NCBI GenBank assembly: GCA_002269645.1
Contig: NIVC01002148.1
Span: 48,676-80,310 of the forward strand
Length of the DNA stretch: 31,635 nucleotides
Direction: 5' to 3'
Origin: Macrostomum lignano
Taxonomy: Eukaryota
The position numbers were made by a program, and so were the translations under genes. This document shows positions 6,790-31,485 of the stretch, piece by piece (position 1 is the stretch's first letter; the number at the start of each line of letters is the position of its first letter). The notes beneath the pieces were generated by a model. That model was not told the DNA's origin. It searched no databases and saw nothing but the letters and a program-made list of their open reading frames with translations.

Positions 6790-7156
6790 GATTTATAACA
6801 AATAATACCGTATAAAACAAAGGATTTCTGATTGCTTGCTAAATTAGATTCGAATGTAGCTACTTATAGTAATACAATGGGGATTGGCCAGACCTTACAT
6901 CAATAGCAAAAGCAGACGTGTGAAATATTTTGCTAAGCTTTGACGTTAGCATAAACTTAAATTCACTTAGAAGCTCGGCTGAAAATAGAAAATACGGACT
7001 CTATTCCACTTTTTCTATTTTAAAATTTTAAAGAACCGAAAGTAGTGATGTAAAAAAATTGCTGACATTTGCAAACATTTAATTTTCCGACAGATCTATA
7101 AAACTCGGTTTACAACAAATATACGCTTGTATCATAAAACTAAATTCGATTTGCAG

Positions 7157-7793
7157 TACCCAGAGGTAATCATTCCAACGAAGCCAGACGCCATCGGCGA
7201 AAACTTCGAGTGGAGCCTGGTCTGCTACTCGTGTGCTCAGCCGAACGACGTATTGCGCAGCAGATGGCACCGCTTGCAGAATGAATGTGCCAACTGTGAC
7301 AAGTGCATTCTGCTGGTCAGAGAGAAGGCCAGTGTGGCACCAAGTGACGTTTGGCAGCGTGTCCGACCCAGACCAAGGAAACTCGTCAAGCTGGACATGT
7401 GCAGGAGATACAGCGATATAGAATCCTGCAACGGTTGCAATCGTTCTGAATGCGACTTTGCCCATGGAGACGCGGAGCTGCGGCAGTGGGAGCTGGAGAG
7501 AATCGGCAAATTCTCCTTCAACAAGCTGCTGGAGTCCAATCGATCAGCTGGGTCAGAACTGCCGCTGATTCTCTGCGAGCGACCTGCGGTCGAAGGAGGC
7601 TCGGAGACCCGAATTTTCTACACGGGTCCGGAGTCGCTTCCCGCCAGACTCCCTGCTGGGAAAGCACAAAATTCCTGCTATTCGCTCTGCAACTCTCTAC
7701 TTGAAGGAACTGAGTGCCAGCATCAAGGCATATGCTTCAGTGCTCACTGTGCTGAGGAGGAGCAGCTGTGGAACATCATGCAACAGAAAAGAG
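7157..7793 (+). CDS. Exon: ZC3H7/RoXaN-like zinc-finger module A (CxxC..CxxC + CCCH + CCCH-like), left copy
   Basis: Open frame within ORF 7127..7798: LVCYSC..CANCDK..LLVR..WQRVRPRP..MCRRY..CNGCNRSECDFAHGDAELRQW..LCNSLLEGTECQHQGICFSAHCAEEEQLW. Acceptor TTTGCAG at 7156 (phase 0); donor GT at 7794 (phase 1). Confidence 0.85.
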
Positions 7794-7884
7794 GTTAAAT
7801 CGAGATGCTTACAGAATTCTAATCTTTACGTTATAGCTCGTAATATTGAATAACGCTCGTGTTACAATTCATTAACTGTTTTAG

Positions 7885-8520
7885 ATAATTGGCCCGAACA
7901 TCTGGTTTTAAGAATCGACAAAATCGAGCCCGAACTCATTGGCTGGAGCCTCGAATCGAGCTGCGACTACATGTACAAGCTGACCTGCTACAGGTGCTCC
8001 GAATCACTGGATCCTCTGAGAAGCAGATTCAAGCTGAAGGAAACACAGAACTGTGAGCGGTGCGACCAGAGCATCCTGCTGGTCAGATCGAAGAACAATC
8101 AAATCAACAAGTGGCAACGCATCCGAGACAGACAAGGACATCTGGTCATATGTGATCTCTACCAATCAAACAAATGCAGGCGCTCCGAATGTGACTTCGC
8201 TCATGGCGATGTGGAACTGAAGCTGTGGAAGCTGGAGAGAATCGGCAAGTTGTCCTTCGACAAACTGCTGAAGTCCAAACTGCCGCCGATTCTCTGCGAG
8301 CGGCCTGCGGTCAAAGGAGGCTCGGAGCCCCAGATTGTCTACACGGGTCCGGAGCCGCTTCGCGCCAGACTCCCTGTGAAACGTAAAGATTTCCACACTC
8401 TCTGCAACTCGCTGTTTCAAAGAAAAGAGTGCCTACATTACAAGTATAATCGCGGCAGCTGCTTCTATGCTCACTGTGCTGAGGAAGAGCAGCTGTGGAA
8501 CATATTGCGAAAGAAAAGGG
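7885..8520 (+). CDS. Exon: zinc-finger module B (phase 1-1, 636 bp), left copy
   Basis: Acceptor TTTTAG ends at 7884. The phase-1 join reads QKR-D-NWPEHLVLRIDKIEP..., in frame with ORF 7971..8549 (LTCYRC..CERCD..KWQRIRDR..CDFAHGDVEL..CFYAHCAEEEQLW). Donor GTAAAA at 8521. Confidence 0.85.
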
Positions 8521-8605
8521 GTAAAATAATCATATTTATATGCTATTAGAGTACGTTTTTAACCTTCGCTATTCTCTCTTCGTAAATTAGAACCATGGTT
8601 TGGAC

Positions 8606-8958
8606 CATATAGATCTTATATTCCCTAGATAGGCCACTTTGTATGGCGTAAATAGAGAAAGCGCGACCGCTGTTTTTCGTCACTTGTGCTTTTGTGCTTG
8701 TGTTTTTCGTTAAATTTTGAGTTCAGTAGCTTAGAGACATAGACGCTTTTTTGAGAATTTAATAGAACTTCTCATGAATTGAATAAAAAGCTACTCAATC
8801 AAACTATGAATGGTGCATGCACTGCAGAGACTACGGACGAAATTGAGTTCAGTAGTTGATTTTCGCGCTGTCGCGAGTTGCAAATGTTTTTACATTAGCT
8901 TCTATGGCCACATGAGTGGTTAATGAGTGGCCCATCCTGCGTATATATATATGATCTT
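8606..8958. mobile_element. Possible MITE in the intron
   Basis: Flanked by the direct repeat TGGTTTGGAC (8596-8605 and 8959-8968). Imperfect inverted ends CATATA..GGCCACT / AGTGGCC..TATATG. Confidence 0.35.
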
Positions 8959-9474
8959 TGGTTTGGACTCATGTTTGATTTGGGTGCGCATTTTAGCAAT
9001 GTGCATTGTAACACGATATAAATGTGTAAAAGCGTGCATTAAACGCTAGAAGCGGGCTTAAATGGCTCGTGATCGCGTATTGGCTGGAGTCATTTAATGC
9101 ACGAGAAATATATATCGTGTTACAATACTACTCAATACTTGGTTTTTCTGGCTTAAATGGCTAGGTCACGATTGCGCACTGTGCTCAAAACCAAGTATTG
9201 AATCCTATATTCGGCTGTAAATGTTTTGATAAGCGGAATTTTCATCTATGGATCATCCTGTCAAATATTGTCTCATTTTGAATTGCAGAATTGTATGCGA
9301 AAATTCTATCTTTAGCTATCAGAGATTTACTGTGTGCCAACTAAATCATGTTACCCTTCCCATATAATCTGTTTATATATGACGCTGTTTTCTTGGCCTC
9401 TACCTACATGTACAAAATGCAATACAGAGTTACCTCCTCTTACGCTCGTATCTAACACGCTCAATTACATTTAG

Positions 9475-9827
9475 AGAAGTGGCCTCAGGAGCTGCGAGCA
9501 CTGATCGACCGAATCCAGCCTCAGCCACAACCGAGGCAGCAGCAGCAGCAGCAGCAGCAAGAAAGTTTCGGAACTGAACAACATTCCTTCGGAGAATGCG
9601 GCGCCCACAGGGCCAGCAACAGCAGATCAGAGCGGGGCTGCGCTGTAGGTCAAGATGCTCCTTGCTCAACGCAACAGCAATTAGGAACTTGGCGGCCGGC
9701 AACATCAAATCGGAGCGGGACTGCACTATCTGCCGTAGGTCAGGCTGCTCCTTACCCACCACAACATCAAGGAAGTCGGCAGCCAGCGACATCAGGTCAG
9801 CAGAAGGACAAAATTCGCGACAAATAA
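9475..9827 (+). CDS. Terminal exon with polyQ / low-complexity tail, left copy
   Basis: Acceptor CATTTAG ends at 9474. The phase-1 join gives KKR-E-KWPQELRALIDRIQPQPQPRQQQQQQQQQ...KDKIRDK* (TAA 9825-9827, translated by hand). The exon start is conserved in the paralog at 26065. Confidence 0.7.
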
Positions 9828-10231: not shown

Positions 10232-10399
10232 TTGGGCCCGGCCATAGACTACAGAAACGTATTTATTCCCCACTTGGGCCCGGCCATAGACTACAGAAAC
10301 GTATTTATTCCCCACTTGGGCCCGGTCATAGACTACAGAAACGTATTTATTCCCCACTTGGGCCCGGTCATAGACTACAGAAACGTATTTATTCCTCAC
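10232..10399. repeat. Minisatellite, 4 x 42 bp
   Basis: Unit TTGGGCCCGG(C/T)CATAGACTACAGAAACGTATTTATTCCCCAC starting at 10232, 10274, 10316 and 10358, contiguous with no spacers. Confidence 0.97.
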
Positions 10400-12849
10400 T
10401 GGCGCAATAAAGCTTCAAAAATTTATAAAGTTTTATTTCTTTTATCAGCCTTTTTATCGGCTTGTCTATATTTACTAATCTATATTCGTGATCTGCAATA
10501 TTACTTAATTACCTTCAGTCCACCACTATTATAATAATAAATAAGCGCCGTGCAGTCGGTACTTTAATTTTACATTTTTCCATTTTTAAAATTGTATTGA
10601 AGCACGAAACAGTTAAAATCGATTTTTATTTCTCGAGTCTCCGGTTTACAGTCTTTGCCTTTTTCGGTACTTTTGCTAGTCAAGCCAGTTTATGGCAGGT
10701 TTTTAAACCGTTGAAACTTTTTCCAGTCTCTGGTTTACAGTTTGTGGTTTTCTCGCGGTAGGTTTGTCAGTCAAACCATCTTTGCAATTACCAGTTTATT
10801 AACCATAACTCATAATTGCAATATCCTTTAAGCTCCCTCCAAGCTTTTGCCGTTATCTATGCACTAATAGGTGGCAGAGTTATTAAGTGTTGCTTAACTG
10901 ATTATGGCTGTGGATAATTTATGCTACTAATTTTTTTATCATCATAACTTTTCCATATCTTCTCAGCTATTCGCAAAATATTTATATGCATATTAACAAT
11001 CACCAATACATCGATATATGAGGTTAACGCTATCCCCATCTGGATATGTCTACCGGCCTGTGTGGCTACGCTTATTGCGCGTCTGAAAAGAAGCTTCAAC
11101 AGAGTCTAATATTGATGTCTTGAATTTTACTTTTTAAGCAACAGTATTACTGTTGGTAGTACTACAGTAGCAGTAGTACTTCGCCCCTTCAACTGCACAC
11201 ACTTGTGCTTGCTGACCAACGTCAGCAAATGCATTCCGTTGGAATGAGGTTCTTCCCAGCTGCTTCACAAGGATGTAGTGAATGCATGTTCGTCCGTGGA
11301 ATGTCCAAGATGTCTTCGAGCTATCGTAGATTCACTCTTAGATCTGCACCCACCCAGCAGTGTCTGTTGAGCACGATGACGCACGCGCTTTTTTTCTATT
11401 GCTGAAGTTCTATCATAGCTCGTATTATATAAATATCGGCTTGCGAGCTTCACCCTCTAGAGTTTTCTAGTGCTCAACAAACTGTGACATGTATATAGTA
11501 GTCTCAGAAGGAATTTAATTGAATTACTACACATTTCATAGTATCTTGAAACTGTTGCTCAACTTGATCCAGCTCGTCTAGAAAATTCTGTCGACCTGTG
11601 GCTTCTTACCGAAAGAGTGCGTCATAGAATGCATTGAGCAGCTTCATTTTATGCGCTAGTCGTGTTCTGTAGTGGCTGCACCGCATGCTTTGAGCCGCTG
11701 CTCCGCCTAATGATTGATGGTCACGACTTCGTATTGAAAAAACGTTCGAGACGTCCTCACCAAGATGAAGGTCTCAAGGTCACCACATCAGGCCCTTGTC
11801 GAAAGCCATGGCAACATGGCAATGCCTTCGCATACGTAGGGATCCCTCAGTGAAGTTACGGATGCACGGACTTCTCTACTAAGTCAGTGCACTGTATGTC
11901 ACCCACATATAGTGGGGTGTGGCTACGCGTTGGAATGGTGCACTTTGATGTATTGACGACTGTGACGATATGGGGGAGTGGGGAGTAAGCGCGTGCTCTC
12001 AGCAATAAGCTCAAAGGGGAGTTATATAGTAATGAATTTATCACAGTTTAAACTCGTTTCACCTTTTATTGCCTCAGCTCGGATAATCATGCAGGTGCAG
12101 CGGTGGCAATTTGAGATGGTGTTGAGCCTATCGTAGGGTAGATGGGTACGGGTGGCTCGGCAGATGCTACTGTTCTGTTGCACAGAGGAAAGAGAAATCA
12201 GAGAACAAGCCTATAGGGCTGTTTACGCAGGTTTGTGCCAGACGTGCACTGTAAGAACAAAGAGCTGGAATATTGTTACTCCGCTCGCTGGGCGGAGGGG
12301 TTTTATTTTAGCATTAAAAACTGGACCGCAACACTGTGTTCCCCATAGTTCGCATATTTGTGCTTCTATTTATTTTGGCCTCAACCGACCGCCGAGTAAG
12401 TTTATGGTGGCCCTGAAAAGGGCCGTTTGAATTTCCAGTCACCTCTTAATACACAACAGCTAGTCTGCAGCTGGTGCAGTCGGTGCAGCCGGTCCCGCAT
12501 TATCTTCAGCTCAAAACGCCGCAGGACCATGCAGACGAAACACGCGGAAGTGATGCTGAATCGGATGATATCCGTGTAGATCCACTGGACCGTCTGTGGA
12601 GTCGAGAGCTCCCATGCAGGTAGGCGCAATGTCTCTCATTTGTGCAGAGCATCGCTTAGCGCACCCGATGACATTGACAACATATGCTTGGTCCAGCGTA
12701 GATCATGCGCGAGCGTTACGACTCGTACAGTTCAAGGACTGCTGAAAAAATCTATATACCTACTTACCTACTTCAAGTAATCTACTTAACTAGTCCTTAA
12801 TTAAAGCGTTTCACCTAGGCATTTTGTTTCTTGTGGGATGTCCTTTCTA

Positions 12850-13510
12850 TAGATGGTGTCTCGCATGCTCCACCACTTCCGCTTTCTGGTGAAAAAAATG
12901 GCCACCATCGTCTTGGCGGTTGCTAATTTATAGTTAGGCAATGTTGGGTAGCCCATTGCTCCTTATGGGCGAACTGCTGCATCAGGTTCCGGAGAAAGCT
13001 GGTGTCAGGGCCACTGAAAAAAGCTACGACATCCGCGTAACCGCACGGCTCTGATGATGCTGCTGGGGGCGTCAATTGTCAGGAGTTCGTCGTCGATCAC
13101 AAGATTCCAGATCAGTTAGGTGAGCACCCGCCTTTGGTTCCGCCCTTCATCACCGTGTGGTTTCAGCATCCACATTGAGCTGTCACCGTTCTGTTTCGGA
13201 TCATAAAGTGGATGATCCATCGCACAACACTTGGTCTGACCTTTTTCTCTTTCCTTTCCCTTTCTCTTTCCTCTTTCCTCTTTCTCTTTCTCTTTTCCCT
13301 GTTTCTCTTTCCCTTGAAAGGGAATCTCTGAAAGAGACAAATTTTGACACTATCAAAAGGCCCCTTCGATGTCACAGAAAAACCCACAGGCGACCTGTTT
13401 GTTAAGGATGGCTTTCTCAATGACTGAGGTTATAACATGCAGCGCGTGCTCGGTGGTTTTACCTGGTTGAAAGGCAAACTGGTGCCTAATTATGTTGTGA
13501 CTCGACCTAA
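12850..13510 (-). mobile_element. Decayed non-LTR retrotransposon RT domain
   Basis: QFAFQPGKTTEHAL..FFCDIEGAF(D) (ORF 13353..13610). A degenerate PQGGVLSP/IWNLVIDDELL lies at ~13075-13130, followed by a GYAD-like motif and KTMVAIFFTRKRK at ~12880-13050; these are readable only across frameshifts. Confidence 0.8.
13240..13315. repeat. CT-rich low-complexity tract inside the RT remnant
   Basis: Near-pure pyrimidine run of TTTC/TTCC/CTCT units. Confidence 0.8.
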
Positions 13511-13994
13511 TCGAAACTATAACTACATGTAGTTGGACTCTCCCAGCGAGTGGGCAACGAGATCGCCTCAGTCTGCTGCCGGACCTGGGCTGACTTCGGT
13601 AACTGAGCATATGAGCGTAACGTCGCGTCTAGAGACTTGAGCAGTTCGTCCCTAATCCCCCCAGATTCATGCAGTGTCCACTGTGAAAGCGTCTCCCACC
13701 GAAGAAACAAATAATACTGACTAATTGTTGTCCTTTGGCTATAGTTGGCTGTGTCGTTGAAACCAAACTCAGAACCGCGCTCTTTCTCACTCACCGCCAA
13801 CTCATTTATAACAATATTTCATTCACACGCACCCCAAAAAATCTCTAGGGTCAGAGATTGGGGCTAAAAAATCCTTCTAGCTGACTGCCGATTGGCCGAT
13901 AAAAACGCACGCACATATCAAATTTGGGAACAGAGGCTACAAGTATTTGGGGGTCGGGTCGCGTGGGCGATCAGTCCAGCCAACAGAGCTGGGT

Positions 13995-14264
13995 ATGCTG
14001 GGTATGCGGCGACTCCAGCTGGCAGGCCGCATCATCCGCACCGAGTCGTAGTGCCCACAGCCGGTGCGAGAGGTGCTGCTGCTAACTCTGCAGGCACCCT
14101 AACGGCGGGGGCAGGCGCGCACTTGGCGTTTCGTCGACTGCCTGCTGGCTGACGCCGGCGCCGTGGATTCGGCCGGCGGCGTGGCGCTCATTCGCAACCT
14201 GGCCTTGAAGCGCACGCTGTGATGCTAACTGCGTATTCGGTTGTTGTTGTTGTTGTTGTTGTTG
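13995..14264 (+). mobile_element. 3' end fragment of a LINE (probably RTE-related) with a (TTG)8 tail
   Basis: Hand translation MRRLQLAGRIIRTES*CPQPVREVLLLTLQAP*RRGQARTWRFVDCLLADAG..ALKRTL* (TGA 14220-22) is homologous to the C-terminus of the next element. (TTG)8 at 14241-14264. Confidence 0.75.
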
Positions 14265-15496
14265 GAGCAGACGGTCCCGCTGATGGGGCAAGCGAAGAAA
14301 TCGCTGCCTGTCTGGCAGAGCGACCCGACCATCAGGCAGTCGCGGCTCAACATCGAGCGACTCCGCAGAAACCGGCGGCTCGGGGGCGACGCTGAAGACG
14401 CGTTTGAGCGAGCAAGCCGCTATCGACAACGCCGTCAGGTCCATCACTGCAGCCGGCCCTGACGTAAAGAGCCGCACAGTGTGGACGGCCGTCCGGACTC
14501 TGACGGGGAGCAAAAAGCGCGTGGCGCTGAATCTGGCCGGCGACACCCCGGAGGAGCGCAGGAATGAATTGCGAACTTCTTTGCCGGCATCGTGAACGCA
14601 CCCGCCTGGACCGTCGCGCACATCGTGCCGATGACAAAGAAGGCAAGAAAAACGCGGAAAGAAGACCACCGCAGGATCTCGCTGATGTCAGGCACCGCGA
14701 AGCTCTTCAACCGGCTGCTGCTCGATCGTCTGCAGTCAGTGCTGGACCCGTACCTGCGGTACGAGCTGAACGGATTCCGGACCCAACGCGGTATAGTGAC
14801 AGTGGTACAGGGCACTCGGCCGTGTCATCAAGGATCCACGCCAGAACGACAGGTTCGTTGAGGTGGCATCGAGCGTCGGTCTCGTTATCAACACGCTGAA
14901 AACCGAGGTGCTGACTGTGCTGGCCGACATCCCAGCAGACCTGACATGCCGCGGCGCAGACGGGCAGACGACCAAGCTCGCACGCTGCCAGCGGTTCACC
15001 TACCTCGGCGGTCTGGTGCCTCACGTGGAGGAAGCCCTCCGGCTTGACTGTTGCAGGCAGTGTTCGAAACCGTCCTGCTCTACAACGCCGAGACGTGAAC
15101 GCTGACGGCTACGCTGGAGCGGCAGACTCAGCGCACTCAGGGCTGCTCCGCGCGGTCTTTCGAGCTGACGAGAGCGTCGGGACCGAGGCCCTGAGCGATC
15201 GGGCCAAGCTGCAGCGCCCGTACATCATCCTGCGCTGGCGGCGACTTTATCTGGTGGGCCACGTGATCCGGGCTGAGGGCTACTGCCCCTATCTGTTCAG
15301 GACGTCTTGCTGCTCACCATGCAGGGCCCGCTCAGGCGGGTCAGGCCCAAACCCGTCGATACGTGGACTGCCTCCTACGCGACGCCGGGGTGCCCGACAC
15401 TGCCAACGGGGTGGACTTCGTCCACTCTCAGGCTCTGCGGCGCGCCATCTGACGCACCCTGCTCTGTGACTTTGATTGCGGGACCGCGTGTTTTGT

Positions 15497-15530
<34 letters not shown>

Positions 15531-15539
15531 ATTGTTGTT
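14265..15539 (+). mobile_element. 5'-truncated, internally deleted LINE (probably RTE-related) with a (TTG)n tail
   Basis: AHIVPMTKK..DHRRISLMSGTAKLFNRLLLDRLQSVLDPYLRYELNGFR (RT N-terminus), VGLVINTLKTE..FTYLG, WRRLYLVGHVIR, stop TGA 15450-52. The central YADD region is missing. Imperfect (TTG)n at 15493-15539. Confidence 0.88.
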
Positions 15540-18500
15540 AAAGTTTTGGAGGGTTTATAGGTGTCGGCAGCAGCTGCACCCAAGGTGCTGCGTGGGGCAT
15601 TACGTACTCGAAAGGGTGCCGCGGTCTCTCGGTCGGTGGCCGGAATGATTTGCTCAGGGTACTCGCCAATAGGAAAGCTTGATGAGAAGAGCAGCTTGAG
15701 AGTCCTAAGTGGTTGTGGCATAGTTTCCATCTATGCACATGTAGGAGAGAGTTGCACTGGACGAGGATAACAGCTGGTTGTAGCATAAAATTATGCCAGT
15801 CATTATCAGCTAAGCAATCCACTCATATAACCTGCCCCATTAATTATTGCATATATAGGGGCTAAAGCTAGAGGATAGTTCAAAGGATATTGCATAGTAA
15901 TGGGTTAATCAACTAGTAATAACTGCTATAAACTGCAGCTTGACTTTTGGACCTCCCGAAAAAACAGTTCTTGAATATTGATAAAAACGCAAACTGTAAA
16001 CCAGCAACTAACGAAACGAAATTGAAAAAAGGATAAAAATTCTTGGGCTGGCGACAGCTGAAGTCAGTCTGTGCGCTTCATCACTTATCGATTTTTCTTG
16101 TTTCACTGCCCTGCTAGAGGGGCTGGTGGACTGGCGGACCAACTGGATCAAAGGTCGCAGCTCATGACAACTACTCAGGATCAAGTGAGAATGCCAATGT
16201 AGTGAGTCGCTAGTTTAGTTAGGCGCCGCACTAGTCAGCTGTTGCCCTCGCCCTCGCCCCAGGCTTCTGTCTGCCGCTGGGCAGTTGCCTGTCCCTCCCG
16301 TCTGTCCTCTGGCCTGTCCTCTGCCCGTTTGCCTGTCTGTCTGTTTGTCCTCGTCTGCCCCTTTTGTTTCGTTTTCCCTTTTTGCAGTGCCCAGACAGCT
16401 TGGTCTGGCCTGTCTCTGTTTCGTTCTCTGTTTGGCATCTCCAAATTTGGAGTGCCGTTCTGTTTTCCGGTCTCACGGGCACGAGTGCCTTCACTTGTGG
16501 GCCTTTTCCCCTTGTCATGTGAGCCAGTCACATGACAAGGCCTTCTTCCTTCTTTAGTCGAAAGTGCAATGATTTCATCATTGTACGCCGGGCTCGTGTT
16601 TATGGGGAGATCACGTGCGCCCGGACCCCTGCCTCCTCTGAGGCAGAACCCGCTTGTTTGTTGCTAAAAAAAGTAACAGAGTCACTCTTGACTCTCAGCG
16701 GGGATCTTTCGTGGTATGGTGCAATCGATCCTCCCTATAAAGGCAGCCCCTCTCTTGGCTTGGCTCAGTCAACCGGCTTTCTCTCCTGTTTTCGAGCCCG
16801 AGATTTTCTCAGTTCAAGCCTCTAAGTTTGTGTGCCAAGTTTGCGCTTAAGTTGAACTCCAAGACTCCCGACTTTGCGTGTGCCTGCTTCCGTTGCTCCT
16901 GCTATCAATTAGCAGGCCAGCTCAGATCGCCCGAAGCTAGCACTTTCGCTCTCACCCCGCACCAGCCCGGCAGGGACTGCTGACGCCTGACGGTGGGCAC
17001 CTCTGCGCCAGAACTGCTAAATCTGCACGAAGTGCGAGTCTCTTTCTCTCGTCTTAGTTATTTGCTTCTCCAAGCTCAGCACCTCACCGAAGGCTGCGAC
17101 TCTGCGAAGCTGGTGGCAGCACTACCAACGCTACTAGATCAACCGGAGACTTCCCAGAAGAGCTCAAGGTAGGCAGCTCACGTGACTGATTGGGAAGCAA
17201 AGAGTAACAAATACTTCACCAAAGGATAACAATTTCTGCACTCTGAACCCTGCTGGTAGTCAAAGCTTAAATGTCATCCAGCAGTTGAGTTGCGATAACG
17301 TTATTGATAATATCATAAAAGCTGAGTTTTATTCTAGCATAAATGTACATCTTGGGTTGTTGCACGCGGTCAATAATTCATGTACGCAGTGAGACGGTAA
17401 AACTTTTTGCATGCGTTCTGTAGCCTTTACATATAAGTAAATGTTTTATTACACCATTATTTTGCCGTTAAAAACCATGCCTTATATTCGTAATCCATTG
17501 CACAACTTACTCTTTTGTAAAAAAACTTATATACTCGTACAACTATTTCTTTTATGTATATACTAAATCATTTATTATTCGCTGTTTCCAGTATAATGCA
17601 CATCCAATAATAAATTTATCTTAATACGCTCGTACAGTACGTGCGCCATTAGACCAAAAATACGTTCAGTTAGGGACGTACAGACTCTCCCCCAAACACC
17701 TGCCTATCCCCCGGTTGAACAAGCGTGTGTCTTCCCCCGTCCCCCTTCTCCAGACGTTCACCCAGGTGTACTGCCTTATCCCCAATCTAGACGTTTTGTC
17801 TATCCCCTGGCATTTGCCTATCCCTTTACTCGTACCCCTTTTAAACACACCTTTATCCATTAGGCGCCTTGCCTCCTTATTTCCTCTGGTATTCTGCCAT
17901 TCCCCATCCCCAAGTCCTTTCCCCCATCATAATGATGGGTTTCGGCCTTTTCGGCCCCTTTCGGGAAGCCTTCGGGCCTCAGGTCTCAGAAATAAATCAA
18001 TTAGAGTCCTGGCCCCCCACTCCTGTCAGATGGTCAGCCCCATGGTAGCTTGATCGTGTGGCGAGCAGTCTTATAGGTCCTATAGCTAAGAGAGGGACAG
18101 CGAGCGAGAGACGAGCAGGGAGAATTTTAAAGGTAGCGATCAGCTAATCCGCAGATCAGCTAACTTGCTGCCACCAGCCCGTGCGTCCTGGCTCACCAAC
18201 CGGAACTTCGAAATCGGGCTTCCGACTAGAGGGGCTAGCACTTACCTGCCAACTAGTGTCTTTTTGCTGTCAATCTCGAAGTCATAGCCGATGATAAGGG
18301 ACACTGCTGGGACTAGATCGCATTGTCCATGCAGGTACAGAGGGGACTTGTGCAGGGGATTCTTGCAGTGGCGAGACTATGGGGTAGCTACATGTACTAT
18401 TCCATTGCTAAATACGAGGAATTGTACTTTTGGCCTTCAACGCGCCAACTAGCCTCTCATAGCGCTGATGATAGGCTAACTCGAACATCGGAGACCGCAT

Positions 18501-20665
18501 GATTCATTACCCGAGCCGCTTGGCGAACCTAGAGTGCACAAAGTACATCTCTGGCGCCGATTTTGCACTATTGGCAATTTTGCTCACTGATTTGATGGAT
18601 TGATCGACTGAGAACCGCCTTGCCATTGGTCCACTGTGACCGGCGCCTACTAGCTTAGCTACTCATCTGAGCCATCGGCGAACAAAGAAATAAAACCGAT
18701 AAAAATAACTGTCAGATTTAACCTTCTCACTGATTCAATTCACACTTCAGATTGATTTGGAGTTTCGGACTACTAACAGTATTATTGACTGATCTCTGCC
18801 TCAATAACAGCACTACTGAACAAAATGAGCAAAATTGTGCGCCTAATCCAGCTACTGAAACAGGGGACAGATAAGGAATCACCCAATCAAGCAAGTCTAG
18901 GTAGCCTCTCACCCAACCAATCAGAAACTCAACAGCCGGAGACCAGGTAATCCACAGTGACCGAATCGGCTTAGTGCTACGCAGCTGTAGACCCGGGATG
19001 ATGCTGATGTCACAACCTTCGCAGATAGCTAGCAGGTGATGATCTTAACCTTGATGTTCGCTGCTGACGACCGGGGGAATTCGTCCTTGATGATGATGGG
19101 GGGGAGTCGCGATCCGGGGATCAAGAGACGACGGTCGAGCTCCGGGAGGTCTAAGTTAGGCCAAAGTCCTAGGAGGTTACCGGGGTTTGAGGTCCGAGCG
19201 GGCCAAAAACACCGGTTTAAATAGCCGCCAACTGGACCGCAATTTGTTATAATGCAACACCTTGACGCTGATTGGCTGAGCCGATTTGTTATAACTGACG
19301 TCGAATTTTCTGATTGGCTGAGCTTGTTGCCACCCAAACTCACGTGACCAGAAGATCTTATCAGTTCCCTCATGGCCATAAAAATACGACAGGTGCGGTC
19401 ATAAATCACTCAAAATCGCTATATAATGATTTATGACCTTTCGCGTAGGAATGACAAAAATTAATGAAAAAATATGCATTAGAAAGATCTTATTAAGTAG
19501 AAAGTGAAGAGAAATCGCTAATCGCTAATCCGAAAGTACTTTTAGGAGTAAAACGCATAGCTGTCAAAGCTGTCAAACGCCTGAGTGAACACGAACAATA
19601 GGCCCTTACCTCATAAATCTGATGGCCTGTCAAAAATGATGAGAAAAAAGCTACCGCCCGCATCCTCTGGCGCCAGCCTCAGCATTGAGTGAGGCGCAGG
19701 TGGCTGTCAGACGTGCTCAAAAGCAATGATTCATGACCCCAAAAGCAGCAAAACACCGCGCCTATTTTATTATAACTACAAGTATGGCCGATTCATATGG
19801 CTACAAAAGTCCTACTAGTATGAAGTCTAGAAAAGTTACATAAAAAGAAGAAAAATGCTCATAGCCTGCTGTTAGTAGGCTAGCAAGTTTGGAACCCATG
19901 TGCGAGCGTGAAATTTGGAAAAAAGTGCGTCCTCATCAATAACTTGATAGTATCGATTTATTCCCCCAGCCCAAAAGGTCCGTAACAAATTGGTGACTCA
20001 GCGGTGGAATTCCATTTATACTCCCCATAACCCTATAACAAATCGGTGACAGCTGTAAGATTAATAAATTCAATATTTCCCCCAGAACTTTCCCCTATAA
20101 CAGTAGAAGCATTCACTTTTAGAAGCTCACAAGTATATAAATCGCTAACTTGGCCAGTTTGGGTATCGCTCATTGCCGCTCACTTTATATGTATATCGTG
20201 ATTACTCTTTGCAGGAGCCCAGAAACAATGCAAAAAAACTGCGAGCATGTTATAAGACGCTGCGTGAGGGGTAGAAATGGGAGCTGCCGTGTGTAAAAAC
20301 TGTGTCCTTGGACCGTTCGCAAGCTGAGCGACGTAAATAGCCTACCAGTGAAGTATGCTTGCTTCGCTTGATTCGCTTGAGCCAGAGAAAGAGTTGCTCG
20401 CATAAAACTCAAGTGTCGGCTCTCTCGGCGAGAAAATCACGTCTTTTATTCATCAGAAAGCAAGAAAATCTTTTCCTCGTGAGATTTTCTTGCCGAGCAA
20501 ATCTTGCTCGAGAGAAACTTGCAAGAAACTCGCAGTTTTTTATTCTTATAAACGCAAGAAATTCTTGGATTTCTTGCAAGAAAAAAATTTCTTTTTTTTA
20601 TTCATACGGCTCTATACGTGGCGCTTATTGAGTTCCTGTTGGATACTGAAATCGCCGGCTGTAGC

Positions 20666-23544
20666 ATGGCCGAGGGCTTGTTCGAAAGCTTTGACGAAAT
20701 CGAGTGCCACTCCAAGTGGCTGCCCGAGCTCAATTGCGACAGCCAAGAAGTTGACAAAATCCTCGAGGAGCTCCATTGGCAAAGCGACAATTATCCTTGG
20801 CTGAAAGGTTTATGCTTGCTCGCCATCGCGCACCTGCACACTCTGCCAGGGTCATGTGACATCGAAAAGGCACGAGAGAAACTCGAATCGATTAAGCCGT
20901 GTGAAGCAGTTTCAGGTGATCTGCCACAGCCGGATGTTAAATTTCTAGTTAAAGCAATGGAGCTCAAACTTCGAATAATGGAGTCACAACCAAGTCTGCC
21001 ATCCAAATACAAAGACCGGCTGGAGGAATTGTCAAACCTGTGGAAAGATAAGTCAGTTCAGGCCACTTGCTTTGTTGCCAAAGGCTGGACAATGCACTGG
21101 TTTGCTGTCGGCAATAATCGAGAGGATTCTTTCCAAATTTGTGCTTCGTCTTTGTTAAAAGCGAAATCAATTATTGAAGGCGTAACTGGTGAAACTGAGA
21201 AGCTTAAAGTGGTTGAATTTATCTGCCTGTACAGTTTGGCGTTCGCCTTCTTCCGGAGACGAGAAAATCACCATCGACTGTGCAATGATGAGTTTGTCTG
21301 CTGGGACAATGCGTACAAAATTTTGACAGACAAAGAGTGGCGGCATCCAATTTTCTTGCTGGAGTTCGCTAGGGCAGTCTCTTGTTCACCTGGTCACGTA
21401 GAGTTGTGCAAAAAACTGTTAGCGGAAGAGAAAAAAAATCGAGAACAACAGGAGAAGTATTATCAAACGTACATCATTTTGCCGGATATATTTTCGTGGC
21501 TGAAGAAGACACGAAAAAATGATACATTTTTGATCGAACTTGAAAAAGATATCAGCAGTTTGCTTGAAGAAGGAAGAAAAATCGAAAAACTACAACAACA
21601 TAAAAAATTTTTGCGTCGAATAGTTGAGTTTCTAATCAGCTGCTCAAGACGAGAAGACGCCAGAGAGCTGTTGCAGAACACAAAGGAGGAGAGGAACACA
21701 GAGCTCTATAGGCCATCCAGCAAATACTGGTTCGAAATAACGCTGATCGCTTTAGAAATACCCAAAACAGCCAAGGGATGCCAGAAGCTACAGCCTAAAG
21801 AGATCGAATCCTTCCTATACCGACTAGAAAACCTGTGCACAAACGTTCCGTCAAAAGCAAGGCAAGTTCGACTGACAAAAGGCATTTTTTTAATAAAGTG
21901 CGGCTACATCGATGAGGGCATGAAGTGCTTAGCGTGGGCCATGAATGACTACCTGCATCCAGCACAAAGCTTCAAGCCGTTTTTGCCAAAAGAAATTAAA
22001 GAAGCTAAAACGGTTTTAGAAGAAACAACGGACAAAAAAAAGTACCTGAATTGGGTTGAAAGTCAATTCGAAACTCATTCGGCATTTTATCACGTCGATG
22101 ACTCGATACAAAAGTACCAGACTGAGCTGAATAGGCAGGATTTAACAGAAGATGAGACATTTTTCATTACCGAGCACCTCGGAAGGCTGCTGTTGAGGAA
22201 GTACAGGTTTGAAGAGGCGGAGCAAAAGTTCAGGTCTCTGCCTGAGGCTCTGGAGCACAAAAACGCAATGATTGCTGACTCCCTCTTGTGTCAGGCAGAG
22301 AGCTTGTCGAGCGGTGATGACGTCACAGAAGTATGCAAGCTACAGGAGTTTAAAGCACAGCCAGATAATGCAGTCCACACAACCAGCATCGGGATGCGGC
22401 TGTACCTGCTGAACGAGTGTGCAAAGCTGGGCTGCAGAGACGCCATTCATGAGGCGCTGCTACTGCTGGAGGACATCCGGAAGCAGAGTCACAGACAGAT
22501 CACTTGTTGCAGCAAGCTCCAAACCATTTGTTCCTGCACAGCACTTGCGTCTACGTGTTTGCTCTCGGCTGCTTCGGCTGAGAGAGCGGGGCTTCCAAAT
22601 TGAGCGAAGAAAAAGTTTTGTAGACTCTGGCGGTGACCAGATGGGTGACATGCTGGACAAAGTAGAGCAAATCTTGGCCACTGAGTTGTATCCAGAAGAA
22701 TTCGACTGAAAATGACACAGCTGAGCTTGAAGTATGAATCAGTAGAGGAAATGCTTCAGAGTCCCGAGGCTGAGCGCAGCATTTGGCACACGCTGGAGGA
22801 GTCCCGAAAAGCACTCGATAGCTTCTGGGCTCAATTCGTCTCTAAAGTGGAGAAGCAGAAACATGGCTCCCAGTCTAAAGCGATATATTATCCATATTAT
22901 CCATTTGCCCGCCGTGATTTGAAAAGCAGCAATGATAGTTTTTCAAACCTTTTCAAAAACAATTGGAGAGATCAAGCAAAACTGTTTACTTCACTGTTGC
23001 AAACCATGAAAAGCACTGTTGAATGTCTCGACAAGGCTAATGAGAACGGAGTTGAAATTAATGCATGCGTGAAGGATCTGGAAGATATTGACGAAGCTAA
23101 GTTAAAAGATGAAGTGTCAGATGACCAGCTAAACGATTTCAAACAGCAGCTGGAGAAGCTCAAGCAATTTTTCAACCCTGCTACCACTGACCAATTAAGT
23201 CAAATCAAGCAGGCTCAATCAAGAGGCTTAGAAATTCCAGTGAGAAATTTAACGAAATGCTACAGAAACCATTCCCACTCGCGTTTCGAGCGAATGACGA
23301 AGTCTGTAAATGGATGATACGGAAGGAAGAGGCCATTGATTCTAACCACGGTTGTTGGCATGTACACTGGTGCGACGAAGTCAACTCAGATAAGCACATT
23401 TATCCGGTTGATGTTGCCAAATTCAACGAAAAAATCAAAGAAAGATTTAATCAGAAGCAGAGTGGGCCAGTAGATGTTCTGGCTTTGGCTCATTACGCTG
23501 CGGAATTCGCTGAAGAGGCCAGGCTCGTTCTCGAAGAGTACACG
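20666..23544 (+). pseudogene. Large first coding exon: IFIT-like TPR region + HEPN-like region, with three apparent frameshifts (~22495, ~22690, ~23200-23250)
   Basis: 661-codon ORF 20618..22603 (likely start AGC-ATG-G at 20666), helical, with ECHSKW (20702-19) and KGW (21080-88). Continues through 22419..22709, 22712..23317 and 23257..23559. Ends at the donor ACG|GTAAGT (23545). Could be a real pseudogene or assembly indels. Confidence 0.75.
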
Positions 23545-23991
23545 GTAAGTTTTTCTTAATTCTATGTTTTAAGAATCAAAGTATCTGTTTTTTGATTAGA
23601 CATTGTAAAATGGAGATCACCAAACAAAGATGATTCAAATGCTGTTTTTAAGCTCTTTTCGATAGTGTAGCAGGTGTAATTTTACTTATTTGTTCGATCT
23701 CGCAATTTCCACTAAATACCACCAAGTTGTAGCAGATTTATTTGTTCTGCCTAATTGAATCACTCCGTTTGTCAACAAGTTACCAACGTATGACTCTTTT
23801 CTAGGAAATTTCCTGATTCACTAGATTTCTTTGGTAAGACACTGTTCTAAATTCATAAATTAAGCCCGAAATTACAGCGTTTCCGGGGACCAAGGGTGTC
23901 CGGCGGCGAGCCTTAATACCTAATATTTGTCTGTCTTCTAATGCCTAATAATTAACATCTAATCTTATGACCTTCTTAATACCCCTTGAGG

Positions 23992-24107
23992 CTGTACGGC
24001 TTTATCTCTACTGGGTCTGTTCGACCTCTATTGCCTGTGCGGCCTTTTTCCTACTTCTGGGTCTGTACGACCTTTATTGCCTGTACGGTCGTTTCCCTAC
24101 TTCTGGG
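23992..24107. repeat. Short tandem repeat, ~2.5 x 46 bp, intronic
   Basis: CTGGGTCTGT(T/A)CGACCT(C/T)TATTGCCTGT..CCTACTT units start at 24011 and 24057; a third CTGGG starts at 24103. Confidence 0.85.
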
Positions 24108-24714
24108 ATAAGAAATGAATAAGCAAAGATCATCTGTCAGCAGAAATTTCCTTTATCAAAAGAGGCAAGCTAGGAACAAACTGGAGCTTGCTCAAGTTAG
24201 CTAGTTTTATTTTCATGCCAGGCGAAGCCTTTTTATAGTAAACAAACGTGTGGGGTGCATCGTAATTGGCGGGGACAACTTAAAACAAAATTAGATGAAA
24301 ATTTTATCAGAAATAGGATTTACAACAAATAATACCGTATTAAAACAAAAAATTTATTTTTGGTTGCTAAATTAGCAACCATTGCGATTTTTGGTCGCAT
24401 GTAGCTACTTATAGTAATGAAATGGGGATTGGCAGACCCCACTTTAATAGCGAAAGGTAGACGTGTGAAATACTTTGCTAAGCTATGATATCAGCATAAA
24501 TTTAAATTCACCTAGAAGCTCGGCTGGAAATAAAAAATACGGATTCTATTCAACTTTTTCTATTCTCAAACACTGTTTTCAAGCTCTTATAGATTAATTT
24601 GAGAACCGAAAGTAGTGGGTTAAAATTTGCATACATTTAATTTACCGACTGATTTATAAGACTCGGTTTACAACCAATATACCCTTGTATCATAAAACTA
24701 AATTCGATTTGCAG

Positions 24715-25351
24715 TACCCAGAGGTAACCATTCCAACGAAGCCAGACGCCATCGGTGAAAACTTCGAGTGGAGCCTTGTCTGCTACTCGTGTGCTCAGCC
24801 GAACGACGTCTTGCGCAGCAGATGGAGCCGCTTGCAGAATGAATGTGCCAACTGTGACAAGTGCATTCTGCTGGTCAGAGAGAAGGCCAGTGCGGCACCA
24901 AGTGACGTTTGGCAGCGGGTCCGACCCAGACCAAGGAAACTCGTCAAGCTGGACATGTGCAGGAGATACAGCGATATAGAATCCTGCAACGGCTGCAAGC
25001 GTTCTGAATGCGACTTTGCCCATGGAGATGCGGAGCTGCGGCTGTGGGAGCTGGAGAGAATCGGCAAGTTCTCCTTCAACAAGCTGCTGAAGTCCAATCG
25101 ATCAGCTGGGTCAGAACTGCCGCTGATTCTCTGGGAGCGGCCTGCGGTCGAAGAAGGCTCGGAGACCCGAATTTTCTACACGGGTCTTAAGCCGCTTATT
25201 CCTGCCAGACTCCCTGTGAAAGCACAAAATTCCTGCTATTCGCTCTGCAACTCGCTACTTGAAGGAACTGAGTGCCAGTATCAAGGCAAATGCTTCAATG
25301 CTCACTGTGCTGAGGAGGAGCAGCTGTGGAACATCATGCAGCAGAAAAGAG
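24715..25351 (+). CDS. Exon: zinc-finger module A, right copy
   Basis: Open frame in ORF 24685..25380, paralogous to 7157-7793. Acceptor TTTGCAG at 24714 (phase 0); donor GTAAAA at 25352 (phase 1). Confidence 0.85.
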
Positions 25352-25494
25352 GTAAAATCGAGATTCTTACAGAATTCTAATCTTTACGTTATAATATTGA
25401 ATAATAATTTACGAGTATATGGGATAAAGTTCAAGTGTGTTACGTATAATAACAAAGAGTTAACGTTCGAATTACAATCCAATAACCGTTTCAG

Positions 25495-25898
25495 ATAATT
25501 GGCCCGAACAGCTGGCTTCAGAAATCGACAAAATCGAGCCCGAACTCATTGGTTGGAGGCTCGAATCGAGCTGCGACTACAAGCTGACCTGCTACAGGTG
25601 CTCCGAATCACTGGATCCTCTGAGAAGCAGATTCAAGCTGAAGGAAACACAGAACTGTGAGCGGTGCGACCAGAGCATCCTGCTGGTCAGATCGAAGAAC
25701 AATCAAATCAACAAGTGGCAACGCATCCGAGACAGACAAGGACATCTGGTCATATGTGATCTCTACCAATCAAACAAATGCAGGCGCTCCGAATGTGACT
25801 TCGCTCATGGCGATGTGGAACTGAAGCTGTGGAAGCTGGAGAGAATCGGCAAGTTCTCTTTCAACAAGCTGCTGAAGTCCAATCGATCAGCTATGTAA
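25495..25898 (+). CDS. Exon: truncated zinc-finger module B, right copy (missed by the ORF track because it has no start codon)
   Basis: Acceptor TTTCAG ends at 25494. Open frame D-NWPEQLASEIDKIEP..KLTCYRC..CDFAHGDVEL..KSNRSAM* (TAA 25896-98). The second half of the module and ~0.8 kb of intron present in the left copy are absent. Confidence 0.8.
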
Positions 25899-26064
25899 GA
25901 AGTGTATTCTTAGTTACCAGAGATATACTGTGTGGCGACTAAATCATGTTACCCTTCCCATTCTAATCGAGAAACACATTTTTGTGGCCTCATTACCCAC
26001 ATGTACAACACAGTATTGCCTCTTATACCAGTGGCTCGTATCCAACACGCCCAATTAAATTTAG

Positions 26065-26270
26065 AGAAATGGCCTCAGGAGCTGCGAGCACTGATCGACC
26101 AAATCCAGCAGTCTCAGCCACTGCAGCAGCAGTAGCAGCAAGGAAGTCGTCAAGCTGAAGTTTGGGATCCTCTTACCCACCATAACAGCAAGGAAGTCGG
26201 CCGCCAGCAACAGCAGGTCAGCAGGACAAATTTGCCAGCAGAGCTCCAAGAGAAAACAGATGTGCAAACC
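26065..26270 (+). pseudogene. Remnant terminal exon of the right copy
   Basis: EKWPQELRALIDQIQQSQPLQQQ* with TAG at 26133-35 inside the CAG run; paralogous to 9475-9827. Confidence 0.7.
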
Positions 26271-28705
26271 TGCTCGAAGTTGATGGCGTTTAACTTTTCA
26301 TAGTGGTCGACAAGCAAAACATTTCTCTTACAATTTTCTGATTATAGTTAATAACTTGACCCACATTATATAGCCGTCATTTTGATAGAAGCATCGTTTA
26401 CTAGGATTCTATTAGAAGTAAGTGATATTGTTTTGCAGCTCTGCTATTATTACTCATGCTCATGACAGCGACTTTTTCTTCAAGTTTCGGTTGATAAATA
26501 GTTGCAGTTTTTCCGGGATCGGAACTTCGTCTCTGTAAAGGTTTTGATGATGCTGATTAAGATTTTTATGTAGCTTCAATCCAAGTCTATGTAGCTTAAA
26601 GCCAACCCCGGGGCATGAGAAATGAGGGGTTTTAAGGTGGCGAGATTCTTAATGGGGATTAATTTTATACAGTATATCAATTTAAACTTGAAGAGAGGCA
26701 TAGAGACCTATTCCAGTTTAGGTAGATTCATTCTTGGCTTAATTTTTTTAGTTACTAGTGTTAAGATAGTGGGTTGCTTTAGGTGTAATTGCCAATAGCT
26801 GATATGTTCTATTTCAATAGGTGAATTCGTATTCCTCTTTTACATGTATAATACTCGTACAATGCTTCTTAACTTCGTGCAGTACACAGCTTTGTCTATA
26901 CCGGTATGTTTGCATTCTCCGTAGTTAATCTTTTATTCTTTCTGAGACAACTATATTTATATATATAGTTTTAGCACGAGAAAACTTGAGCTCTGAACTC
27001 ACAAGCCGATATTTATAATACGAGCTGCTATATACCTTTGAGCTGCCCTCTAGCCTCAAAAACACTTAAGGCTGTTTGATGCGCTATAGTTTTTTGGGCT
27101 AAAATGTACTTTTCAGTATAATCAGTTATTATATATCTATATATGATCGAGAAACACGATGAAAATTTCATCAGCTCTGGGTCTTGAAACAAAGTCTATA
27201 CTGCACAACACAAAAAGCACTATGGGTTTAAAATAATGATGCACACTAATTACAAAATAAAGGATCATCACGTTCAAATAAAGAATTGGCCAAAAAAAGT
27301 GAATACAGCGAATGTACGCTGTCATACGGCGACATTCATTTCGTGATTATCTGTTGCACATTTTAATTTTAAATACGACTACACAATTTTGGTGATGGAT
27401 AAAGCGAATATTCCTTTGAAGTTTTGCCTTCCTGCGCAAAAAAATTGTCTAAGGTTTTATCGCATTGTGTTTTTGTGTTTGCTTTCTGTATATGTTTCTG
27501 CGTTATTTGCGATGAGGTTTTTGCATCCCCTGTTCGAATGTTTTTTTTCCAATTTTTCAGCGCTTATCTCCTTTGTTTACTTACTCGCACGTACACTACG
27601 TTTTTAATCGCCCTTTTGTTAATCCAGATTGACTATTTATCCTATCCTGTACTCCGTTTACTTGACATGTACCTAATTATTTGATCCCATTTTCACTTTT
27701 GTTATTTCGCCATGAGTACTTTATCATAGCGATTACGAGCTACCGTGTATACCCATGATCGCCTAATGCACCTGCCGCCTTCGCTTCACGTACGCCCACC
27801 TTTTTCACCTTATCCGTTCTGATTTGTTATAATCGTAAATTTTAAGTCTTACCACTCTTACCAACTTTCGTTAAAGCCTGTGTCGACCCCGCTTTCTATT
27901 CAATTGAGAATCGAGATAAACCCAGCACAAGCCGAGGCTTCGTTTTATTTAATTTGCTTTTTCTAAACATAGCTAGCTCACTACTTTCAGTTCTCGGCAC
28001 AAACTAACTGCGTCACAGATGCCCAAGACTTTTCTTTCTTTTTAACGTAAGACAAACTTTGAGACAAAATCGATGCATTATCATCAATGGCAGTTCAGCA
28101 AGCATAAATTTGAGTCATATATCCGCATAACAACTGCAGAGGCTTTTATGTCAATTAATGAGGGTTGTGTTGTGTTGTGTCATAAGCTTGCTGACAACTG
28201 CAGGGATCGATTTCATAAAAAAGCTACAAGTGACAAGTCGACAAATGACAAGTGTCAAGCGTCAACGATTTTGGTTTCATAAACTCATTTTTGTGTCTAT
28301 GGTTGAACCACCGTTTGAAATCGATCCAGCCTTTAAACTGGAGTCTGAAGGACGGACTGAAGACCTGGACGAAGGTGGTGCCGTTCGACCAATTTCTACA
28401 GAAGTTGTTGCCGACTATATCTGATAAGAACGAGCCGATCAAGCGGAAACCCCACGGCGTCGCCTGATGTGCTAATGTGGGGCCTGTGCGACGATGTGAC
28501 GCGCGGCACAGTGATTTTAATGCCGCAGATCATGAGACAAATCAGGCAGTTGATCCCAAGTTTGGAGGCCAGAGCAGGAGATCGTATAACCTTCGTCCAC
28601 GTGGCCATGATAAACTATCGTATCATATCTAGGTCTGTGCGTTTGATAGTTAAATACAAAATATCAGAGCTGGCTCACTGAGAACTTTATTGTTCGTGTT
28701 ATCTA

Positions 28706-31012: not shown

Positions 31013-31485
31013 AATTAGCAATAAAAAAGGTTATTTGAGCCAAGTGTGCCAAGAAGGACAAAGACATATAACTGTGCCAAATGTCATAGCTGTGGCACAA
31101 CTGGTACAATTGTAGCAAGTGTGCCAAGTGTGCCAGTCTGTTTTAATAACCAATTAGCTATAAAAAGGATATTCGTGCCAAGTGTGCCAAGAAGGACAGT
31201 CCAAGACAGTTATATAACTGTGTCAAATAGTATAGCTGTGGCACAACTGGTACACTTGTAGTAAGTGCGCCAAGTGTGCCAAATGGTTTCCAAGGGGAAT
31301 TAGCTATAAAAAGGTTATTTGTGCCAGGTGTGCCAAATAGGACATACAAAGACATTTTACAAACTGTGCCAAATGGCATAGCTACGGCACAATTGGTACA
31401 ATTGTATCAAGTGTGCCAAATATGACATACAAAGACATTTATAACTCTGTCAAAGGGCATATTTGTGGCACAACTGGCACACTTA
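31013..31485. repeat. Degenerate satellite, ~140-146 bp unit x ~3.3, built from TGTGCCAA subrepeats
   Basis: AATTAGC(A/T)ATAAAAAGG unit starts at 31013, 31152 and 31298. Confidence 0.9.

Follow-up and report, generated by a model that had tools for sequence, protein, structure and literature searches.

Human ZC3H7A and ZC3H7B, which act in mRNA decay and translational repression and are reported from chordates only, combine a tetratricopeptide repeat (TPR) domain at the N-terminus, a long variable linker, and C-terminal fingers (10.1101/2025.04.21.649502). HEPN domains of the DZIP3 type are fused to TPRs and a Zn-ribbon in animals (PMC3710099). The HEPN domain is defined as a four-helix bundle with the motif Rx4-6H where helix 3 ends and a polar residue after the arginine; an acidic residue is often present in helix 2, and some families lack the arginine (PMC3710099). 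The IFIT proteins are reported from jawed vertebrates only (PMC3688568), and IFIT5 requires its residue K150, which touches the beta and gamma phosphates, for 5'-ppp binding (PMC3950709). Here we describe a locus that invites comparison with these groups, located at positions 20666-25898 of a 31,635-nucleotide stretch of DNA of the flatworm Macrostomum lignano (contig NIVC01002148.1, positions 48,676-80,310 of the forward strand), which is called the window below and to which all coordinates refer. The initial annotation presented the locus as a candidate single-chain antiviral RNA system composed of an IFIT-like sensor, a HEPN-like nuclease, and a ZC3H7-like array of CCCH zinc fingers. We consider it probable that the locus holds one copy of an M. 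lignano gene with several domains, from a small and lineage-restricted family, that the gene product probably acts on RNA, and that this copy is a decaying duplicate. The closest known architecture is that of ZC3H7A/B. The gene has the following layout:

20666-23544, plus strand: exon 1, with the TPR domain, the helical linker, and the conserved C-terminal core; delimited with the list of open reading frames (ORFs) and tblastn with the homologues P0003, P0004, and P0012.
20666-22500, plus strand: TPR solenoid of ~610 residues; its N-terminal block is of the IFIT type, with a CH..W motif and a KGW....F block.
23305-23544, plus strand: conserved C-terminal core with the signature E..W...W....N..KH ... 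H..AE..E.
23545-24714, plus strand: intron 1, 1,170 bp, GT..AG, phase 0, holding a 46-bp tandem repeat.
24715-25351, plus strand: exon 2, the complete zinc module 1, in which a ribbon of the C4 type (CxxC...CxxC) is joined to two CCCH fingers.
25352-25494, plus strand: intron 2, 143 bp, GT..AG, phase 1.
25495-25898, plus strand: exon 3, zinc module 2 with only the C4 ribbon and the first CCCH finger, then a stop codon.

The donor ACG/GTAAGT at 23544/23545 and the acceptor TTTGCAG/TAC at 24714/24715 were found as claimed in the initial annotation, and intron 1, with its 1,170 bp and phase 0 on either side, joins the two exons in frame. The tandem repeat inside this intron spans positions 24011-24107 (46 bp x 2.1). 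Exon 2 continues into exon 3 via the second intron at 25352-25494 in phase 1, the removal of which generates a ...KRD-NWPE... linker that recurs between the zinc modules. The ATG at position 20666 is aligned with the N-termini of the homologues. The first 645 codons of exon 1 are open without a break and have homologues with expectation values (E) of 3e-44 to 1e-4. The measured length of exon 1 of 2,879 nucleotides is consistent with the proposed ~960 codons, and with ~1,300 codons when exons 2 and 3 are included. Judged from the sequence, the coding potential of the locus is far above chance expectation, because the 645-codon open stretch has homologues and the zinc-finger exon is 96% identical to a UniRef protein.

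The junction between exon 1 and the zinc-finger exons is crossed by two M. lignano protein models, both of which are fragmentary protein predictions, not transcripts. The model A0A1I8G528 (P0001) reads ...AEFAEEARLVLEEYT up to the junction and YPEVTIPTKPD... after it, which is the exact splice product of the locus. The more divergent A0A1I8HQA1 (P0003; 654 residues, 45-61% identical) reads ...AEFAEEARLVLRNYS followed by YKEVSGFP..., and its chain contains the end of the TPR region, the linker, the conserved core, and one zinc module together. The acceptor of intron 1 fits the consensus and is conserved in an upstream partial duplicate of the gene, described below. The fusion of exon 1 to the zinc-finger exons is likely real, because two divergent paralogues share the in-frame junction and the acceptor is conserved upstream; the one-chain architecture proposed for the locus is thus upheld. 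It is very improbable that the TPR/core exon and the zinc-finger exons belong to separate genes, with the fusion being an artefact of gene prediction: the donor and acceptor fit the consensus with compatible phases, the acceptor is kept in the upstream copy, the two divergent paralogues, at 48% identity, have the same junction at the same residue, and the first zinc-finger exon starts at an acceptor, without a start-codon context of its own. Points in favor of two genes are the open zinc-finger exons of the upstream duplicate, which have no exon 1 in the window, the model P0002 with zinc modules alone, the homologues P0004 (PAA92423), P0012, and those from the European Nucleotide Archive (ENA), which lack zinc modules, and the fragmentary nature of the P0001 and P0003 predictions.

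HMMER, run exhaustively on 1.84 billion representative proteins with the 645-residue stretch as the query, returned six relatives only. Three of them are from M. lignano, namely A0A1I8HQA1, PAA92423 (1,062 residues), and PAA70660/PAA70671 (1,091 residues), and the other three are from the ENA assembly ERZ25074608, where they lie on contigs of eukaryotic size at ~110x coverage. In every full-length member, the TPR region at the N-terminus is accompanied by the shared C-terminal core, and the pairing is kept in four Macrostomum lineages and in the ERZ25074608 eukaryote. The tail after the core varies. It is formed of zinc modules in the gene described here and in A0A1I8HQA1, of about five GGSEHFRGRGG repeats (RGG-type) in place of the zinc modules in PAA92423, and of an Ala/Lys/Glu-rich sequence in PAA70671, and the ENA homologues have nothing after the core. 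CCCH fingers bind RNA, and the same role is widely ascribed to RGG repeats. Because the CCCH fingers and RGG repeats sit on different paralogues, the family most likely works on RNA. Pattern scans with the core and the N-terminal region identified no further relatives in the JGI metagenomes or in 185,579 prokaryotic species genomes. A word-index homology search with the TPR region gave no match, and one with the core alignment gave no match although known family members were in the collection. The searches used the exon 1 pieces unjoined, or intact paralogues. No mention of the Macrostomum gene identifiers was found in the literature. The family is real, uncharacterised, and lineage-restricted.

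A UniRef model of 4,203 residues named "AMP deaminase", which belongs to the same 90% cluster as PAA92423, is probably a gene-model fusion. In one ENA homologue (L001), the TPR ORF and the core ORF are in different frames and are separated by a 19-nucleotide GT...AG segment (positions 7831-7849 of L001), the removal of which would join the ORFs in frame; the segment may be a micro-intron or a coincidence.

The pieces of the locus itself have no TPR, HEPN, or zf-CCCH match in Pfam. Among the paralogues, two have matches to Pfam TPR families, with E down to 7e-10, and the family profile matches LapB and consensus TPR proteins in the PDB with E ~1e-5. The AlphaFold2 model of the TPR region is an all-helical solenoid, as in IFIT5 and IFIT1, with a predicted local distance difference test (pLDDT) score of 70. 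In a Foldseek comparison with the PDB, structures of IFIT5 are ranked 2, 3, 5, 7, and 8, and those of IFIT1 13, 22, and 30. For the profile built from the first 260 residues, IFIT5 is the sole real match among 177,635 distinct PDB sequences (E = 1.4), and the other listed chain is a designed repeat protein (E = 3.9). The IFIT5 alignment runs from N-terminus to N-terminus over 157 residues and places the family motif LECHF.W on LECHFTW of IFIT5, and KG.T...FG....a..Af.eAl on KGWALLKFGGKYYQKAKAAFEKAL. Both blocks are present in IFIT1 too (CHF.W and KGW..L..FG). CHF.W is positioned ~10-20 residues from the start, and the distance from block to block is 126 residues in IFIT5 and IFIT1 and 124-132 residues in the six family members. 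When the N-terminal profile was scored against 20,000 shuffles, IFIT5 ranked 1st of 20,004 and IFIT1 61st. The hhalign comparison with IFIT5, or with IFIT5 and IFIT1 together, resulted in a 27-column local match that includes only the second block, with a probability of 72-92%.

The position of IFIT5 K150, read in one reliably aligned block where the alignment covers this pocket residue only, is not conserved: it is occupied by Cys in three members, Trp in the gene described here, and Ser or Arg in the rest. The flatworm family differs from IFIT5 and IFIT1 in its 13% identity in fold alignments, in a solenoid that is ~150 residues longer, in the fusion to a further conserved domain and zinc fingers, and in its flatworm host, which provides no interferon system context. 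The resemblance to IFITs thus appears weak but specific, and the odds that the TPR region is homologous to IFITs are about even. Recognition of RNA 5' ends in the manner of IFITs, as in the sensor proposed in the initial annotation, is conjectural.

The core at the C-terminal end of exon 1 has ten invariant positions (E, W, W, N, K, H, H, A, E, and E) in six members from two organisms. All six members contain the motif [IV]-N-x-x-K-H, in which Asn and His have the canonical HEPN spacing and there is no Arg. The AlphaFold2 model of A0A1I8HQA1 has four helices in residues 456-538, with the motif sitting where a helix ends and a loop begins. The pLDDT is ~50 there, too low to judge the fold of the core, and the values range from 30 to 58 in the linker, core, and zinc parts of the model, too poor for a fold search. 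Searches of Pfam, at E up to 10, and of PADLOC gave no HEPN family for the core, and a profile search of the PDB gave chance-level matches only (claudin, connexin, and uL23). A PADLOC match to the coiled-coil-type LmuB in the linker of A0A1I8HQA1 was judged meaningless. The likeness to the HEPN superfamily, and especially to proteins of the DZIP3/hRUL138 type, consists of a helical domain downstream of TPRs and of conserved Asn and His residues at HEPN-like spacing near the end of a helix; TPR/HEPN/zinc fusions with lineage-specific expansions have been described (PMC3710099). In contrast to HEPN domains, the flatworm core has a motif without Arg, no profile match to any HEPN family, and a second invariant helix, H..AE..E, that is outside the HEPN definition. 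The core is therefore best described as a conserved helical domain that is not demonstrably HEPN, and its designation as a HEPN-like nuclease, given the missing Arg and the lack of matches in Pfam, PADLOC, and the PDB, is not supported. It could still be a HEPN domain, because some HEPN families lack the Arg. No paper that places IFIT with HEPN in one protein was found in the literature.

At 24715-25351, the zinc-finger exon shares 96% identity with UniRef A0A1I8G528 and 53% with A0A1I8HRB3; these two are M. lignano entries named "C3H1-type domain-containing protein". The module is formed of a CxxC...CxxC ribbon followed by two CCCH fingers with the spacings C-x7-11-C-x4-C-x3-H and C-x8-C-x5-C-x3-H. 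In the PDB, the module profile matches ZC3H7A best (2d9m, E = 6e-4), followed by TTP (1m9o, E = 2e-3), and then by TIS11d (1rgo) and CPSF30. By these cysteine and histidine patterns and profile matches, the modules contain real CCCH fingers and C4 ribbons. The label "ZC3H7-like" is fair for the finger, because the CCCH domain of ZC3H7A is its best solved match; the two share C.FAHG.AEL..WE (2d9m). The flatworm protein also shares with ZC3H7A/B (RoXaN) the order of an N-terminal TPR region, a linker, and a C-terminal CCCH array. It differs from the chordate-specific ZC3H7A/B in that its fingers are organized in repeated modules with a C4 ribbon and in the presence of the extra conserved N..KH core. 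Outside the finger no ZC3H7 homology was found: with the 645-residue TPR region as the query, the exhaustive search by HMMER gave the six family members only. The tandem CCCH proteins of the TTP/TIS11 type have similar C.FAHG..EL fingers, matching TTP (1m9o) and TIS11d (1rgo), whereas the flatworm fingers are ~70 residues apart and follow a C4 ribbon, instead of forming a tight tandem pair.

The copy of the gene in the window is broken. According to the ORF list and tblastn with paralogues, the homologous reading in exon 1 runs through frames 2, 3, 2, and 1 in order, with exactly three frame changes and zero additional in-frame stops. All three frame changes are in the last third of the exon. 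Short introns as their cause were ruled out because the paralogue alignment is continuous across the frame changes. The initial annotation attributed the changes to three single-base indels; their number is correct, but one or more of them seem to involve a longer indel when compared with the paralogue. Exon 3 stops past the first CCCH finger of module 2, whereas the upstream copy runs ~1 kb further, and the blastn self-comparison breaks at 25882/25892 versus 8278/9294. The upstream copy has the following position:

6783-9815, plus strand: upstream partial duplicate, with the last part of intron 1, two zinc modules that are complete and open, and the downstream flank.

The duplicate matches positions 24310-26233, which cover the final part of intron 1, the exons with the zinc fingers, and the flanking DNA downstream, and its zinc modules are at about 7157-7793 and 7885-8520. 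No second exon 1 was found anywhere in the window. The 5' exon of the duplicate may lie beyond the window, or the duplicate may be a fragment. Exons of the duplicate and of the gene copy are 95-97% identical and introns 79-85%, and the identity between the two copies is patchy, ranging from 87 to 99%. The ratio of nonsynonymous to synonymous substitution rates between the copies is 0.33 for module 1 (exon 2) and 0.70 for module 2. These values are in line with constraint in the past and with some gene conversion. The local duplication named in the initial annotation is limited to the 3' part of the gene and its downstream flank. This copy is most likely a decaying duplicate and probably a pseudogene, since 645 codons are clean and all frame changes are in the last third of exon 1. 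An intact gene that was affected by assembly errors or misassembly is less likely.

In the explanation that we regard as probable, one large exon would encode a ~600-residue TPR solenoid with an N-terminal subdomain resembling vertebrate IFITs, followed by a helical linker of low conservation and a helical core of 80 residues. Two more exons would add the repeated zinc modules, in each of which a C4 ribbon is combined with two CCCH fingers. The CCCH modules may bind RNA, the TPR solenoid may hold RNA or a partner protein, and the core with its invariant His, Lys, Asn, and Glu residues is a candidate effector or interaction surface. Several points weigh against this explanation. RNA binding is deduced from domain types only, and the support for the junction consists of splice consensus and predicted protein models, with the zinc-finger exons of the upstream duplicate having no exon 1 nearby. 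The IFIT similarity is not significant database-wide (E = 1.4), the hhalign match is limited to 27 columns, and IFIT1 scores poorly. Ctr9, IFT-A, OGT, and Ski3 equal the IFITs in fold score, with template modeling scores (TM-scores) of 0.3-0.46. The near-identical model P0001 (A0A1I8G528) has different frame problems, which keeps an assembly error among the possible causes of the broken frame. The significance of the locus is reduced by the copy being probably dead, by the family being tiny, and by the general idea of such fusions in RNA biology and conflict systems having been described already.

Three other readings have to be weighed. It is possible, but doubtful, that the gene encodes a ZC3H7-like post-transcriptional regulator without an immune role, in which the TPRs form a protein scaffold, for example for decay or translation-repression complexes, the CCCH fingers bind mRNA, and the IFIT resemblance is generic TPR similarity. 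The layout is as in human ZC3H7A/B (10.1101/2025.04.21.649502), among solved structures ZC3H7A matches the finger best, generic TPR scaffolds and IFITs fit the fold equally well, and the zinc-finger exons show purifying selection. However, the exhaustive search with the TPR region returned no ZC3H7 or other animal protein outside the family, ZC3H7A/B are reported from chordates only, the N..KH core has no counterpart described in ZC3H7, and the CHF.W and KGW blocks are IFIT-specific among PDB chains. The single-chain antiviral system of the initial annotation, in which an IFIT-type sensor would recognize the 5' ends of non-self RNA, a HEPN RNase would cut this RNA, and CCCH fingers would provide RNA affinity, is unlikely. 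The Arg of Rx4-6H is missing in six of the six members, HEPN matches are absent from Pfam and PADLOC at E up to 10 and from the PDB, the pLDDT of the core is ~50, and the K150 position is Cys, Trp, or Ser in five members and Arg in one. Consistent with the antiviral system are the arrangement in one chain, the IFIT-like N-terminal block, the small size of the family with its variable tails and decaying copies, and the [IV]N..KH motif, which has Asn and His at the R-N-x-x-x-H spacing and in the low-confidence model lies at a helix end and loop start, the place where HEPN motifs sit, with some HEPN families lacking the Arg (PMC3710099). The antiviral sensor-effector function ascribed to the locus is pure conjecture, and the copy in the window is broken. 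Quite unlikely is a version in which the gene is an invertebrate relative of IFITs, with an RNA-end clamp, an undescribed catalytic helical domain that is possibly an Arg-less derivative of HEPN, and CCCH modules. If it were true, the protein would be a one-chain sensor-effector directed at foreign or transposon RNA, and the IFIT type would have originated before vertebrates and independently of interferon.

The three-part architecture was initially put forward as unprecedented, which is too strong, because the combinations of TPR with CCCH fingers (ZC3H7A/B) and of TPR with HEPN and a Zn-ribbon (DZIP3-type) have been described. If the homology to IFITs is real, IFIT-type TPR proteins would be older than jawed vertebrates and would occur in animals that lack an interferon system, which bears on the open question of the origin of interferon-stimulated genes in vertebrates. 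For the conserved N..KH / H..AE..E core, no relatives were detectable in Pfam, the PDB, PADLOC, the JGI metagenomes, or prokaryotic genomes.

The 11-nucleotide motif GCRAGMAAHTC forms a cluster at positions 20391-20564, 100-275 bp 5' of the start codon, with copies in both orientations. All six matches in the window are inside this segment, compared with 0.28 expected, and the array has a spacing of ~32 nucleotides and contains short perfect inverted repeats. No such array is present upstream of the PAA92423 paralogue (locus L002). The array may be a cis-regulatory element or a small hairpin-forming element, and is a candidate for either.

Other parts of the window contain remnants of mobile elements and repeats. 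Scans for tRNA genes and Rfam families gave no match in the window, and a weak tblastn match of A0A1I8HQA1 at 27128-27316 was rejected as a chance match in AT-rich DNA. A remnant of a retroelement of the long terminal repeat type is positioned at 130-2725 on the minus strand and is formed of gag-like, protease-like, reverse transcriptase, and RNase H pieces (Pfam RVT_1 and RT_RNaseH). Its reading frame is broken by no fewer than three in-frame stops and by two frame changes, and the element extends past the start of the window, with the integrase part outside the view. The segment at about 13350-15650 is GC-rich (up to 63% GC), has overlapping ORFs on both strands, and contains scraps of a reverse transcriptase of the non-long-terminal-repeat type (weak RVT_1 match) that are flanked by TTTCYC, GTT, and TGT runs. 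Local direct duplications, 3467-4225 versus 5974-6740 and 2826-3040 versus 4578-4795, have 90-99% identity and spacings of ~2.5 kb and ~1.75 kb, respectively, and are located in the non-coding stretch 5' of the partial duplicate. Tandem repeats are present at 10232-10400 (42 bp x 4, 98% matches) and 31013-31419 (146 bp x 2.8).

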